Shown here in pieces: positions 43,994-60,605 of a DNA stretch of 64,000 nucleotides (position 1 is its first letter; each line of letters begins with the position of its first letter). Origin of the DNA: Macrostomum lignano (taxonomy: Eukaryota); assembly GCA_002269645.1 (NCBI GenBank), contig NIVC01000463.1:62001-126000 (forward strand), in the 5' to 3' direction. The position numbers were made by a program, and so were the translations under genes. The notes beneath the pieces were generated by a model. It made no database searches, had not been told where the DNA came from, and saw only the letters and a list, made by a program, of their open reading frames with translations.

Positions 43994-46900
43994 TCACACA
44001 GACAGCGCAATAGCGGCTGACGAGGATGGCCGACTAACGCCGTGTTGAACTGCGGCCAACTCCAAGGCCTTCGCGTGCCATTCCTGCTTTTTAGCGAGCC
44101 AATCCTTTGCAATTTGAGAATGGGGAGCGAAATTTGGTAGGAAAAGAAGCAGCTTTATTCCCATTTTTGTTTTGATAAATTGCATTGTACGAGACGCGAG
44201 GAGGGTTGGTGAAATTAATGCATGCAAATTTACTCGTTGCAGAAAATACACTGCTTCTCAATTATGTACAAATCTAAGATTCCATATTCGTTTTTACAGT
44301 TGTATTCATTCAATAGAACATGAATACTAAACTATGCTTTAACGAAGCAAGTCGACATTTTCAACGATACGTTTGGAGGGAAAGATGATGATTTTTAGTT
44401 TAGTGGAAACTGAATTTAAACGGTCAATTGCTTGAAACTAAAAATGCCTTCATACACTCAATGATTAGATTGACAAAGCATTGCCGACTAATTTTGAATT
44501 TGGGGCCAAAGCTGTTTTAGTTTTTCGAAATCAAACGCGAATTAGTAGAAATATAGTACACATCAATATCAATCTGTCTGACAGCCCTTTGTGACTTTCC
44601 ACACTATGAAAACAATTTATCAGAGACCTTGCTTACGCAGAAGTAAAAACTATTTGTAAATCCGACTGCAAAAACTCAAGGCATGGTTTAATCAAAGAAC
44701 TCCACTACGATTTCTAGTTTCTGTCAAAAAATTCAAAGTCGAACACAAAAAGGAGTGGAACTACTTATAGTAATATTTAATGTTAAAACAATTCATAAAT
44801 ATTTCAAGGCACACTTCGAATAAAATGAATATTGCAATGATGAGCTGCAACTATAAATGATAAGATGATTGTAAAATGGTCAGTCATTCCTACGGTGTTC
44901 TAAAGTGCAAAATAGATGTAATTTCCGTGGCACCAAAAAACTAAAGTCATATTTATACTACCAAATTGCCCGCAGTTCAAATAACAAAGATTCTTATTGA
45001 TCGGCAGCTCACCTTGTACTCTCTGTCCTTCTTGTGCATCTCGCGACGTCTTCGACAAGCCTGAAAAAATTTTCGGATTTGTTTTACCAAACTTTATAGT
45101 TTTCATCAATTCAAGCAGCTAATTACCAAGATACAAACCCTATATGCTACTGTTGGTTATTTGCCAATTTAAGTGCTTTAATAAGTTTGATAAAAACGTG
45201 TAAGTGCATAATTTACTAATCAATTTTAACGCAAAAAATAGGCTTTCAAGCAACTTTTTCCACGATCCTTAAAAAATTGCTTGACTAGCCAATGCCATTT
45301 ATCGATTTTCGGATAAAAACAACACTGGAAGAAATACTCAGTGTAAAAAACCGAGCCTCACTCACATCGTAATAAAGCCAGAAGATAAAGATCACGTGAG
45401 CCAGTACGTACAGCGCGCCAAAGCTAATGAACACGTCCTTCTCGATTTTGTTCACCATCTCCATCCGGCGCAGGTGTTTCGAGCACGGCTCGCCAGTCTC
45501 CCCCTGCAGTAGGCAGTCTCGGAGAGCGGCGGCGCCGCCTCCTGAGCTCAGGACTCGAGGATGATGAAGCTGCGATGTGGCGTTGCGACCGCCGCCGAGG
45601 CTAGGAGGCTGGATCATAGTTACCACCGCGTGCCAGATGCTCACAATGCAGAGAATGGCCAGAGACATGAGCACGTATTTGTCCTGCGTGTGAGTTTTTA
45701 GCATGCGTTGAAGTTGTCTAACAGGTCAGCTTTTTTTGTCTAACATATCCTGGCTCCCCTGTCTAACAGGTCAGGGTTCCTGTCTAACAGGTCAGGCTCT
45801 CCTGTCTAACAGGTCAGGGTTCCTGTCTAACAGGTCAGGGTTCCTGTCTAACAGGTCAGGCTCTCCTGTCTAACAGGTCAGGCTCTCCTGCCTAACAGGT
45901 CAAGCTCTCCTATCTAACACGTCAGGCTCTCCTGCCTAACAGGTCAGACTCCCTTGTCTAACAGGTCAGGCTCTCCTGTCTAACAGGTCAGGCTCTCCTG
46001 CATAACAGGTCAAGCTCTCCTGCATAACAGGTCAAGCTCTCCTGTCTAACAGGTCAAGCTCTCCTGTCTAACAGGTCAAGCTCTCCTGTCTAACAGGTCA
46101 AGCTCTTCTGCATAACAGGTCAAGCTCTCCTGCATAACAGGTCAGGCTCTCCTGCATAACAGGTCAGGCTCTCCTGTCTAACAGGTCAAGCTCTCCTGTC
46201 TAACAGGTCAAGCTCTCCTGTCTAACAGGTCAAGCTCTCCTGTCTAACAGGTCAAGCTCTCCTGTCTAACAGGTCAAGCTCTCCTGTCTAACAGGTCAAG
46301 CTCTCCTGCATAACAGGTCAGGCTCTCCTGTCTAACAGGTCAAGCTCTCCTGTCTAACAGGTCAAGCTCTCCTGTCTAACAGGTCAAGCTCTCCTGTCTA
46401 ACAGGTCAAGCTCTCCTGCATAACAGGTCAGGCTCTCCTGTCTAACAGGTCAAGCTCTCCTGTCTAACAGGTCAAGCTCTCCTGCATAACAGGTCAAGCT
46501 CTCCTGTCTAACAGGTCAAGCTCTCCTGTCTAACAGGTCAAGCTCTCCTATCTAACACGTCAGGCTCTCCTGCCTAACAGGTCAGACTCCCCTGTCTAAC
46601 AGGTCAAGCTCTCCTGTCTAACAGGTCAGGCTCTCCTGTCTAACAGGTCAAGCTCTCCTGCATAACAGGTCAAGCTCTCCTGCATAACAGGTCAAGCTCT
46701 CCTGCATAACAGGTCAAGCTCTCCTGCATAACAGGTCAAGCTCTCCTGCATAACAGGTCAAGCTCTCCTGCATAACAGGTCAAGCTCTCCTGTCTAACGG
46801 GTCAAGCTCTCCTGTCTAACAGGTCAAGCTCTCCTGTCTAACAGGTTATAGGTTGTTTTACCAGTTCTTCAGATTGTAAGCCTGTCTAAGACTGTAAGGT

Positions 46901-58900: not shown

Positions 58901-60605
58901 TACCATTCCCTGACTTCCCCTACACCGAATTCTCTATCCCCAGACTTCCCCACCCCCTGACTTCTCCATCCCCGAATCCCCCATCCACGAATTCCCCATC
59001 CCCTGACTTCTCCATCCCCGAATCCCCCATCCACGAATTCCCCATCCCCTGACTTCTCCATCCCCGAATTCTCCGTCGCTGGACTTCCCCACCCCCGAAT
59101 TCCCATCCCCTGACTTCCCCATCCCCTGACTTTCCTATCCCCTGACTTTCCCATCCCCAAATTCTCCACACCCGAATTCCCCATCCCCGAATTCCCAATC
59201 CCCGAATTCCCCATTCCTTGACTTCCCATCCTCTGACTTCCCATCCCCGAATTCCCCATCCCCGAATTCCCCGTCCCCGAATTCCCATCCCCTGACTTCC
59301 CATCCCCTGACTTCCCATCCCCAAATTCCCCATCCCCGAATTCCCCATCCCCTGACTTCTCCATCCCCGAATTCCCCATCCCCTGACTTCTCCATCCCCG
59401 AATTCCCATCCCCTGACTTCCCCATCCCCTGACTTCCCCATCCCCGAATTTCCCATCCCCCGGCTTCCCCATCCCTTGACTTCCCCATCCCCGAATTTCC
59501 CATCCCCCGGCTTCCCCATCCCCTGACTTCCCCATCCCCGAATTCCCATCCCCTGACTTCCCCATCCCCTGACTTCCCCATCCCCGAATTCCCATCTCCT
59601 GACTTCCCCATCCCCTGGCTTCCCCATCCCCGAATTTCCCATCCCCCGGCTTCCCCATCCCCTGACTTCCCCATCCCCGAAGTCCCATCCCCTGACTTCC
59701 CCATCCCCTGACTTCCCCATCCCCGAATTCCCCATCCCCCGGCTTCCCCATCCCCTGACCTTCTCCGAGCGGATTCGGCAGCGCTCGTCGCTCTTCAAGG
59801 CGCTGCTCTTGTAGTTGACCTGGCCAGACGAGGTGCCCCGTCGTCGATTTCGAGTTCGAGTCTGCTGCAGCGCCACGCTCGTGTTGTCGTTGATGGAGTC
59901 TCTGAGCGTCTCCAGAGCTTCGATCAACCGTGCGGTCGGATTCAACGACCTCGCCGCGTCTGTCAATTGTTGAAGCTCGTCGCCTCCTCGCTGCCCGTCA
60001 TCTGCATCGGCATCTTCGTCGACTTCAACGGTCGACGAGGCATCTGGGAGGCCGGCCGCCGCCGCCGCCGCCGCAAAGGCGGCTGTCTCAGCTTCATCGT
60101 GTCGACCAGCAGTTGAGGCAGCTTCGCGACCGTCGCCAGTTATCGAATCGCTTTTGGCCGCTCGGTGAACCGCCGGCCCGTGGCCGGAGCTCAGGCACTC
60201 GTTCGAGTTGAACTCGGCGCTGTTGTTCGAGAAGCAGTCGTCATCAGTGTCGACGGCCTGGTAGGATGTGTCCTAGGATTCGAGTAATTTTTAGAAGTGC
60301 CGCAAATTCAAGGTGACAGTTGCAGGCAGTCTTGACTACGAGCGAATCCCACTGACACAAGGCGACAGCGGCTCCGACTTCTCATAGACAGACAGACGTG
60401 AACACACTTTTCCCAATACTACAAACTGTTTGCCAGGTAGTATCGTATGCTGCTAAATGGTCTACCATTATGACTATACTGCCCCTCAGTACAGCTCTAC
60501 ACAGCTGGCTGTCAGGTGCAAATAATTGCTAGCACTTACTCCTCCAGTTCGACGCCTTCTCTTGGCTTTCTTCTTTAGATTGACCAGCTCTTGAACCGAA
60601 GACAT
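43994..60605 (-). CDS. Cys-less (Pro-loop) pentameric ligand-gated ion channel subunit
   Basis: All-phase-0 exons: 60540-60605 (MSSVQELVNLKKKAKRRRRTGG), 59760-60272, 57145-57273 (VEIRVVFLKIGEIDT..ADAFIQAKWKEP), 53216-53416 (YWNPLIYIDN..RRRIKGVFLETLELNDFPLDVQ), 51925-52182 (DLTITI..RAARRPGYFYWNVFLIM), 49992-50147 or 49766-49921 (M1 end, M2, LP[KR]ISYLTYM), 45366-45683 (DKYV..M3, loop, M4), 45013-45060, 43994-44104 (last exon less certain). The FPLD loop has no flanking cysteines. Confidence 0.9.
45715..46846. repeat. 22-bp minisatellite (TCTAACAGGTCAAGCTCTCCTG)
   Basis: ~50 tandem copies ending ~30 nt from the M3 exon acceptor. Confidence 0.97.
47280..47990. repeat. Degenerate (GATT)n/(GGTT)n microsatellite
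   Basis: Direct reading. Confidence 0.93.
48746..49606. repeat. Compound (GACA)n/(GATA)n microsatellite, ~860 bp
   Basis: Two GACA-GACAAACAAACA-GATA blocks in tandem. Confidence 0.98.
49766..49921 (-). CDS. pLGIC M2 exon b (FMISGLSFATFAVEPNKCEYRLRLSFTLVLTSVTFKYVVAQSLPRISYLTYM)
   Basis: ttacag| and |gtaagg; 156 nt, phase 0-0. Confidence 0.9.
49992..50147 (-). CDS. pLGIC M2 exon a (FFITGLSFATFAVGADKPESRLQLSFTLFLTSVAFKFVINQSLPKISYLTYM)
   Basis: gttaag| and |gtgaga; 156 nt, phase 0-0; 38/52 aa identical to exon b. Confidence 0.88.
50344..51055. mobile_element. hAT (Charlie/Tip100-like) MITE with an internal (CTCTC)n expansion
   Basis: TIR CAGGGGTTGGCAAACT vs CAGGGGTCAGCAAACT (14/16); 8-bp TSD CTCTATTT/CTCTATAT (7/8); subterminal GGCCCG motifs. 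Confidence 0.85.
52285..53004. repeat. 34-bp minisatellite (GAATGTCATTGAGACAATAGTGAACACTCTCTCT)
   Basis: ~21 tandem copies. Confidence 0.97.
54838..54966. repeat. 18-bp minisatellite (TTGACCATAGACGGTGTT)
   Basis: ~7 copies. Confidence 0.9.
56015..56491. repeat. 38-39-bp minisatellite (GATTAGAATGGATTGCTAGTCTAGTTTACATGGGATAAC)
   Basis: ~12 copies with polar variant drift (GGGATAAC to GGGATGAT to GAATAAT). Confidence 0.96.
57315..58529. repeat. 36-bp minisatellite (GGTCATTGGGGACTGGCACTGTCTAAATGAGTCATT) with interspersed shorter units
   Basis: Tandem copies translating as LVIGDWHCLNES. Confidence 0.97.
58835..59759. repeat. Degenerate 15-16-bp C-rich minisatellite (ACTTCCCCATCCCCTG / AATTCCCCATCCCCG) starting at the pLGIC exon 2 donor
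   Basis: Direct reading. Confidence 0.95.

Follow-up and report, generated by a model that had tools for sequence, protein, structure and literature searches.

Is the ligand-binding domain (LBD) of a pentameric ion channel gated by ligands (pLGIC), a class whose textbook definition includes an extracellular agonist site, in some animals placed in the cytosol instead? The question is raised by a gene on the minus strand of a 64,000-nucleotide stretch of the genome of the free-living flatworm Macrostomum lignano (GenBank assembly GCA_002269645.1, contig NIVC01000463.1, positions 62,001 to 126,000), referred to here as the window, in whose coordinates all positions are given. A first-pass annotation, made from the letters of the window, had described a Cys-less channel subunit at 43994-60605 that may insert upside-down, and the limits of the gene model rebuilt here from the nucleotide sequence coincide exactly with those bounds. 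The gene encodes a genuine pLGIC subunit of Macrostomum lignano, for which an N-in/C-in topology with a cytosolic LBD is predicted, with a probability of roughly two in three. This topology is rated best because all of the family-wide signatures computed (signal peptide, C-terminal tail, charge distribution and N-linked glycosylation sequons), any of which could have told against an inversion, agree and both control families, bacterial ELIC-like proteins and vertebrate nAChR alpha1, are the mirror image. The upside-down insertion first proposed is thus supported as a prediction.

The gene product is a pLGIC subunit

The gene model comprises nine coding exons, all in phase 0 and all bounded by GT-AG splice sites, which join into a coding sequence of 1800 nucleotides (nt) running from an ATG at 60605 to a TGA stop at 43996-43994 and specifying 599 amino acids (aa). 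A database protein of Macrostomum lignano (P0001) is 97% identical to this model and a paralogue (P0002) is 73% identical to the window's protein, the core of which is 56-77% identical to annelid, nemertean and cestode orthologues. Top matches in sequence searches were flatworm, annelid, nemertean, rotifer, mollusc and brachiopod proteins, with amphioxus also appearing. The Pfam domain Neur_chan_LBD (PF02931) was matched at residues 189-358 with 34.2 bits against a cutoff of 26 (E 2.3e-8), and all 69 relatives scanned matched it as well; PF02932 scored below its cutoff in the window's protein (18.2 versus 28.1 bits). The Pfam scan of the 69 relatives detected the two pLGIC domains only, with no extra cytosolic-type domain fused to any member.

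Among proteins of solved structure the best relatives by sequence (phmmer) were ELIC (3e-16), GLIC and GABA-A gamma2. An AlphaFold2 (AF2) monomer model of residues 122-599, built on a 58-sequence alignment, reached a mean predicted local distance difference test score (pLDDT) of 81.5 and consists of a long N-terminal helix, a beta sandwich and the helices M1-M3 and M4. The beta strands occupy model residues 73-255 and the helices M1-M4 model residues 257-280, 286-310, 315-344 and 387-462, the last of these being M4 and the tail modelled as a single 76-residue helix. When compared with the PDB by Foldseek, the model matched full-length GlyR, GABA-A and 5-HT3A chains (E ~1e-19, probability 1.0, TM-score 0.6-0.7 on the target). 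A recent bacterial transfer, suggested by the similarity to ELIC, was rejected in view of the eight introns and the spread of the family across animal phyla.

All peptides quoted in the first-pass annotation were located on the minus strand, among them the Pro-loop peptide ETLELNDFPLDVQ at 53254-53216. The Pro-loop of the window's protein reads NDFPLDVQ, with F, P, D and Q invariant in 58-69 relatives. The pair of cysteines that lie 13 residues apart in a Cys-loop is absent, as had been claimed, with T and D at the Cys positions of ETLELNDFPLDVQD. This absence is already published for a eukaryotic 'Cys-less' Pro-loop clade composed mostly of Lophotrochozoa, in which platyhelminths, amphioxus and sea urchins are also represented (Jaiteh, Taly & Henin 2016, PMC4795631), to which eight schistosome members with Glu at M2 -2' have been assigned (Johnson et al. 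2023, PMC9874803). The window's gene is a member of this clade, having an FPxD loop without flanking Cys, no second Cys-loop and, at the M2 -1'/-2' site where the clade carries an acidic residue, Glu at -2' in both of its alternative pore exons (PESR in exon 6a, CEYR in exon 6b). The proteins most closely related to it are those of schistosomes, cestodes, annelids, nemerteans, molluscs and rotifers in the clade, from which it shows no structural difference. The elements that couple the LBD to the pore, namely the GEIDT beta1-beta2 loop, FPxD, the pre-M1 Arg and SYLTY(M/L)D in the M2-M3 loop, are nearly invariant, and for this reason gating of the pore by the LBD is probably retained.

Absence of a signal peptide

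The predicted protein begins with MSSVQELVNLKKKAKRRRRTGG (60605-60540), and the first-pass annotation had found no hydrophobic signal sequence ahead of the beta sandwich. Hydrophobicity was scored over the first 70 aa with a 9-residue Kyte-Doolittle window, the highest value being taken, and was calibrated on controls. The maximum before beta1 in the window's protein is 1.91, reached in an Ala run and too weak for a signal peptide. The same absence extends to the orthologues: among 89 relatives that start with Met and have at least 25 residues before beta1, the mean best window is 1.05, only three reach at least 2.08, none reaches 2.5, and 86 are without a hydrophobic h-region. By the same measure a signal peptide was flagged in 22 of 23 ELIC-like bacterial controls (mean 2.68) and in 87/97 vertebrate nAChR alpha1 controls (mean 2.63), the latter being database entries matched by an nAChR alpha1 probe sequence. 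Orthologues without a signal peptide come from six spiralian phyla and amphioxus and include RefSeq models and transcript-derived open reading frames (ORFs).

The missing signal peptide does not appear to be an annotation artefact. Reading in frame 5' from the ATG, 46 codons that contain neither an ATG nor any hydrophobic stretch are passed before a stop is met. The first-pass annotation had allowed for an alternative first exon supplying a signal peptide, and no candidate for such a leader exon (ATG, hydrophobic stretch and phase-0 donor) occurs in the 3.7 kb of upstream sequence held by the window. Messenger RNA contigs decide the matter for several relatives, four independent contigs having a frame that is closed upstream and supplies no signal peptide. 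An in-frame stop is located 7 codons upstream of the start in L001-3, 27 codons upstream in L006 and 52 codons upstream in the polyadenylated L008, where the intervening frame is polar. In L005, also polyadenylated, the upstream frame is open for 89 codons but polar.

One protein among the 150 best representatives, P0250 (ENA metagenome contig, 454 aa), does have an N-terminal transmembrane segment or signal anchor (9-residue Kyte-Doolittle maximum 3.89), and neither the pre-M1 RAARR motif nor the polybasic tail is present in it. From its sequence it looks like a canonically oriented cousin; if orientation is set by these features, RAARR and the basic tail would be expected to be missing together where an anchor is present, as they are here. 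Separately, a mitochondrial presequence or nuclear localisation signal, suggested by KKKAKRRRR at the N-terminus, was considered and set aside, as even the paralogue does not conserve it.

Conserved N-terminal extension, C-terminal tail and charge distribution

Between the first exon and the beta sandwich the first-pass annotation had counted 171 polar, low-complexity residues, and exon 2 encodes exactly this number. Its 3' part specifies a conserved amphipathic helix, PTARLIEALETLRDSINDNT, modelled by AF2 with pLDDT 82-94, followed by the basic linker DERCRIRSEK. Both elements are kept across subfamilies: the helix, PT.RLI.A(I/L)E.LR..I..NT, is recognisable in every one, and the linker between it and beta1 takes the form DERL+VRKEK.

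At the other end of the protein, the long basic tail reported after M4 was borne out. Its polybasic motif ACRRRREMHKKDREYK (45060-45013) corresponds to a post-M4 motif, C[KR]RRRxMxxKD[KR]EY, conserved in flatworms, annelids, nemerteans, molluscs and brachiopods, and the basic tail runs on into the ninth exon as DWLAKKQEWHAKALELAAVQHGVSRPSSSAAIALSV followed by the stop codon, an extension backed by the paralogue P0073. A second tail helix, (D/E)(W/F)LxK(K/R)KEW, is found in several lineages and corresponds to exon 9 here; it is shared by P0073, Owenia and Lineus. Post-M4 tails in the family are 17-135 aa long, versus 1-6 aa in ELIC-like controls and ~10 aa in nAChR alpha1.

The positive-inside rule places the basic flanks of membrane segments in the cytosol. 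Lysine and arginine residues (K+R) were counted on the LBD side, taken as the M2-M3 loop plus 15 residues each ahead of M1 and behind M4, and on the other side, comprising the M1-M2 and M3-M4 loops. The family means are 10.9 for the LBD side versus 4.5 for the other, with the LBD side higher in 41/41 members, and where the M3-M4 loop is short (11-22 aa, 22 members) the corresponding values are 11.1 and 3.0. ELIC-like controls gave 3.7 on the LBD side versus 4.3, and nAChR alpha1 gave 3.2 versus 5.3, with the other side higher in 96 of 97 sequences.

Linear motifs in the termini were also noted. FFAT motifs are cytosolic and bind VAP proteins of the endoplasmic reticulum (ER); the consensus is an E-F-F-D-A-x-E-like heptad, with F/Y at position 2 and a small residue at position 5, that follows an acidic tract (PMC7610837). 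FFAT-like sequences, NFYDA(S/P)x or DYFDAPx, lie in an acidic tract of the N-terminal extension of P0004 (the annelid Owenia, aa 77-84), P0012 (the nemertean Lineus, aa 43-50), P0006, P0009 and P0038, which suggests VAP binding and tethering at membrane contact sites in some orthologues. The window's protein has no FFAT motif, with only the degenerate DDDCFSNNSAEFNSNE at that place, and its paralogue P0002 has SYYDAGY there without an acidic flank, so the motif counts as support for some orthologues only. The C-terminal -LSV of the window's protein resembles a class I PDZ ligand, and RRTST, a PKA-type consensus, is present in the tails of the paralogue P0073, Owenia P0004 and Lineus P0012. Both would fit a cytosolic tail; neither is conserved family-wide.

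A distinct subclade (P0157, P0158 and P0177 from the leech Helobdella robusta, together with P0165, P0174 and P0180) was observed to have the Pro-loop FEFMEL, the pre-M1 sequence VSRRPQFF and acidic post-M4 tails, together with sequon-rich or poly-Thr M3-M4 loops and no signal peptide.

Distribution of sequons and cysteines

An exhaustive HMMER search gave 11,827 matches at E<=1e-3 and 700 at E<=1e-30. Sequons were counted in 50%-identity representatives and compared with the expectation from composition-shuffled sequences. The M3-M4 loop was the only enriched region, with 40 sequons observed versus 23.0 expected (Poisson P = 8e-4), and loops of at least 25 aa accounted for 35 versus 18.3 expected. 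Observed and expected numbers elsewhere were 64 and 78.7 in the LBD, 112 and 104.7 in the N-terminal extension and 35 and 43.5 in the tail. In nAChR alpha1 the cytoplasmic M3-M4 loop is sequon-depleted (21 versus 75.1), and the LBD, with its conserved site, is at expectation. A sequon 9-15 residues after M3 recurs in divergent flatworm subgroups as NAT, NQT, NSS, NTT or NST.

The first-pass annotation had pointed to a sequon and a Cys pair in the M3-M4 loop (RDCLLQGETGEPCSK, 45521-45477). Both are present; their conservation does not extend across the family and is confined to the two Macrostomum paralogues. As arguments for inversion, these two features and the Cys-less loop, which is already published for the clade, are weaker than the first-pass annotation made them. 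Its caveat that a sequon also occurs in the N-domain was accurate, as NET lies in the LBD, where it is found in 2/58 relatives. No LBD sequon and no LBD cysteine pair is conserved among these 58 relatives, in 55 of which a single pre-M1 Cys is kept.

Predicted topology and alternative explanations

By established insertion rules, a protein without a signal peptide that has a large, foldable, charged N-domain and a positive flank before its first transmembrane segment should retain the N-domain in the cytosol. The combination of no signal peptide, a large charged domain and a flank of +3 to +5 before M1 therefore predicts a cytosolic N-domain here. With four helices, a cytosolic N-terminus implies a cytosolic C-terminus too, which fits the conserved polybasic tail. 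No signal peptide is present, and the first hydrophobic segment comes after ~380 residues, made up of the 193-aa extension and the beta sandwich. In the proposed mechanism M1, preceded by RCRAARRPG, would therefore serve as signal anchor of type II, after which two hairpins, M1-M2 and M3-M4, would insert with short exoplasmic loops, and the polybasic post-M4 tail would be retained in the cytosol. This would put the beta-sandwich LBD on the cytosolic face, along with the coupling loop between M2 and M3 and the long helix of the tail. The M3-M4 loop and that end of the pore which carries the -2' Glu would be turned to the cell exterior or to the lumen of an organelle, and the channel would be gated or regulated from the cell interior. 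By analogy with the ELIC-like pore, and given the -2' Glu, the channel is probably cation selective, a speculative assignment; a putative intracellular ligand and the target membrane are likewise speculative.

Several points weigh against this topology, and some of them speak directly for a canonical one, in which the LBD would be extracellular by virtue of a missing signal-peptide exon or of M1 serving as a reverse (type III) anchor. To our knowledge the LBD of all characterised pLGICs is extracellular or periplasmic and none with a cytosolic LBD is on record, and the fold is fully canonical. Trematode relatives have a strongly basic stretch just before M4, e.g. REQHKRRLMMRIERD, which resembles a cytoplasmic MA helix and makes the M4 flanks ambiguous in that group. 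In the polyadenylated contig L004 (Logan ERR6338309, protein P0006) the first in-frame ATG lies upstream of the orthologous start and would add a 43-aa, AT-rich and partly hydrophobic leader (L004:205-333); the orthologous start is the second Met (MISSRSLL, compare Lineus MLFSRIAL), and the leader may be either read-through of the 5' untranslated region or a lineage-specific signal anchor. For the window's gene itself, a signal-peptide exon may possibly lie beyond the 3.7 kb of upstream sequence. Other points concern the strength of the signatures: the K+R bias of the window's own protein is small (12 versus 9), the tails of a leech subclade are acidic, not basic, and the measures of hydrophobicity and charge, although calibrated on controls, are simple ones. 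The sequon excess rests on modest counts from sequences that are not fully independent, the loops of Schistosome group A hold about as many sequons as expected, and the NAT sequon and Cys pair of the window's gene are common to it and its paralogue, not family-wide.

A canonical topology is nevertheless considered unlikely. It has to contend with the absence of signal peptides in models from six or more phyla, with mRNAs carrying in-frame stops upstream of the start and with the lack of a leader-exon candidate upstream of the gene within the window. Translocation of a folded, highly charged N-domain of 200-600 aa together with RAARR, without a signal peptide, would contradict what is known of signal-anchor orientation, which depends on the difference in flanking charge and on N-domain folding, and the conserved polybasic tail of +6 to +8 would be put outside the cell. 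The controls all behave in the opposite manner.

Less probable still is that the protein is inverted but not ligand-gated, the beta sandwich having a regulatory or scaffolding role (contact-site tethering, or sensing of pH, Ca2+ or phosphorylation) and the pore conducting as a leak or under some other form of gating, perhaps in the membrane of an organelle. No amine-type aromatic box is recognisable, and loop B reads SER in the window's protein where ELIC has EPF; as the phmmer alignment with ELIC is misaligned in the loop A region (WNP unpaired with WVP), mapping of the orthosteric site was dropped for all but loop B. The linear motifs of the extension and tail (FFAT-like, RRTST, terminal -LSV) would suit such a role, and no agonist has been reported for the clade (PMC9874803). 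The near invariance of the elements that couple binding to the pore argues instead that gating has been retained. That the gene is a decaying or non-functional copy with meaningless termini is very improbable: the Macrostomum lignano genome is highly duplicated and the database models P0011, P0058, P0065 and P0073 are fragmentary or frameshifted, but splicing at consensus sites yields an intact ORF of 1800 nt, its core retains the identity to orthologues given above, and the unusual termini are conserved family features not peculiar to this copy.

The N-in/C-in arrangement with a cytosolic LBD may, more tentatively, be extended to an ancient animal clade as a whole (Spiralia and amphioxus), which would be inside-out, the LBD responding to a ligand within the cell by gating a cation pore, with possible tethering to the ER at membrane contact sites through FFAT in some lineages. 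The size of such a clade would be up to 700 50%-identity clusters at E<=1e-30 against the profile, a number that may include other pLGICs.

Comparison with known channels and implications

ELIC and ELIC-like proteins (Dickeya/Erwinia; PDB 8d67, 2vl0), the best solved-structure match by sequence, share with the window's protein the Cys-less loop and the pore residues Q2', T6', L9', A13' and F16' of exon 6a, and their short M3-M4 loop is also found in many family members. They differ in having a clear signal peptide and K/R in the M3-M4 loop, in ending 1-6 residues past M4, and in possessing neither an N-terminal extension nor a tail. Canonical Cys-loop receptors (nAChR, GABA-A, GlyR, 5-HT3) have the same fold and coupling motifs. 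What sets them apart is a disulfide closing the Cys-loop, a signal peptide that is cleaved off, glycosylation of an extracellular LBD, a C-terminus of ~10 aa and a long, basic, sequon-depleted cytoplasmic M3-M4 loop, all of which are reversed or absent here. CNG/HCN, IP3R/RyR, TRPM4 and K-ATP are channels gated by cytosolic ligands. They would offer a functional analogy only (cytosolic sensor to ion flux) should the prediction hold; there is no homology, and their folds and stoichiometries are entirely different from those of the window's protein.

Planarian homologues of the Cys-less clade are summarised by Johnson et al. (PMC9874803) as being expressed in mechanosensory neurons, with RNA interference resulting in seizure-like movement. 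The clade has been proposed as a source of anthelmintic targets in schistosomes and tapeworms, and no agonist or functional data are reported for it (PMC9874803). Its LBD is termed 'extracellular' in both PMC4795631 and PMC9874803, neither of which comments on signal peptides or orientation. The literature searched offered descriptions of the Cys-less feature and no account of any pLGIC that is inverted, lacks a signal peptide or has its LBD in the cytosol. The lack of the signal peptide, the reversed charge and sequon signatures and the topology proposed for the clade appear to be unreported.

If the prediction is correct, these proteins would be intracellular-ligand-gated channels of a new class, and a receptor family known from textbooks would hold a natural case of inverted topology. 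The evolution of the superfamily would need to be reread, as a bacterial-type ancestor that lost its signal peptide would be turned over in the membrane. The absence of a known agonist would be explained, since the usual assay, a screen of extracellular ligands, would probably miss such receptors, and a search for intracellular ligands would be opened. Anthelmintic assays against the proposed targets (PMC9874803) would also change, as drugs would have to reach the cytosolic face.

Tandem alternative pore exons

The pore region is encoded twice in the gene, by exons 6a (50147-49992) and 6b (49921-49766), each of 156 nt with good splice sites and the latter located 70 bp downstream of the former. 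The alternatives span the end of M1, M2 and the M2-M3 loop. Exon 6a specifies E-2', Q2', T6', L9', A13' and F16', as in ELIC, and exon 6b has R2', T13' and Y16', so that the pore differences are Q/R at 2', A/T at 13' and F/Y at 16'; the M1-M2 loop is GADKPES in 6a versus EPNKCEY in 6b. Both exon types exist in other flatworms as separate genes or exons (P0021 is 6a-like, P0010 6b-like) and in the paralogue (P0065). The UniProt model P0001 wrongly concatenates the two. Exons 6a and 6b are likely to be mutually exclusive splice forms, presumably with different conductance or selectivity.

Exon organization and other features of the window

All exons lie on the minus strand. Exon 1 (60540..60605, aa 1-22) is polybasic, without a hydrophobic signal sequence, and is followed by the donor GTAAGT. 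Exon 2 (59760..60272, aa 23-193) encodes the polar/acidic N-terminal extension, and exon 3 (57145..57273, aa 194-236) contributes two strands of the ligand-binding-type beta sandwich, beta1 and beta2, with the GEIDT loop between them. The WNP motif of loop A, the non-conserved NET sequon and the Cys-less Pro-loop are located in exon 4 (53216..53416, aa 237-303), followed in exon 5 (51925..52182, aa 304-389) by beta7-beta10, the invariant basic pre-M1 motif CRAARRPG and the start of M1. Exon 6a (49992..50147, aa 390-441) encodes the end of M1, the M1-M2 loop, the M2 pore helix and the M2-M3 loop, and exon 6b (49766..49921) is its tandem alternative copy of equal length and phase. Exon 7 (45366..45683, aa 442-547) covers M3, the 59-aa M3-M4 loop with the NAT sequon and Cys pair, and M4. 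The polybasic post-M4 motif forms exon 8 (45013..45060, aa 548-563), and exon 9 (43994..44104, aa 564-599 and stop) encodes the tail helix beginning DWLAKKQEWHAKALE and ends in -LSV.

Nearly all introns of the gene hold large tandem arrays of mini- and microsatellite type, with periods of 22, 34, 36, 39 and 46 nt as well as (TGAT)151, (TAGA)215 and (TCTCC)99. These arrays lie at 45715-46846, 47365-47969, 48746-49606, 50403-50895, 52277-53004, 56015-56500, 57326-58529 and 58833-59759, and they account for the long spurious ORFs seen in six-frame translation.

Elsewhere in the window, the Pfam Exo70 exocyst subunit C-terminal domain was detected at 6622-7221 on the minus strand (E 5.4e-25), marking an exon of a neighbouring Exo70-like gene. 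Long repeat-derived ORFs, with units such as SLSNPAQP and WILSDWVE, occur at 859-1368, 4850-5830, 8973-9416, 20916-21399 and 22602-23245, alongside strong local swings in GC skew, and both fit a repeat-rich genome.

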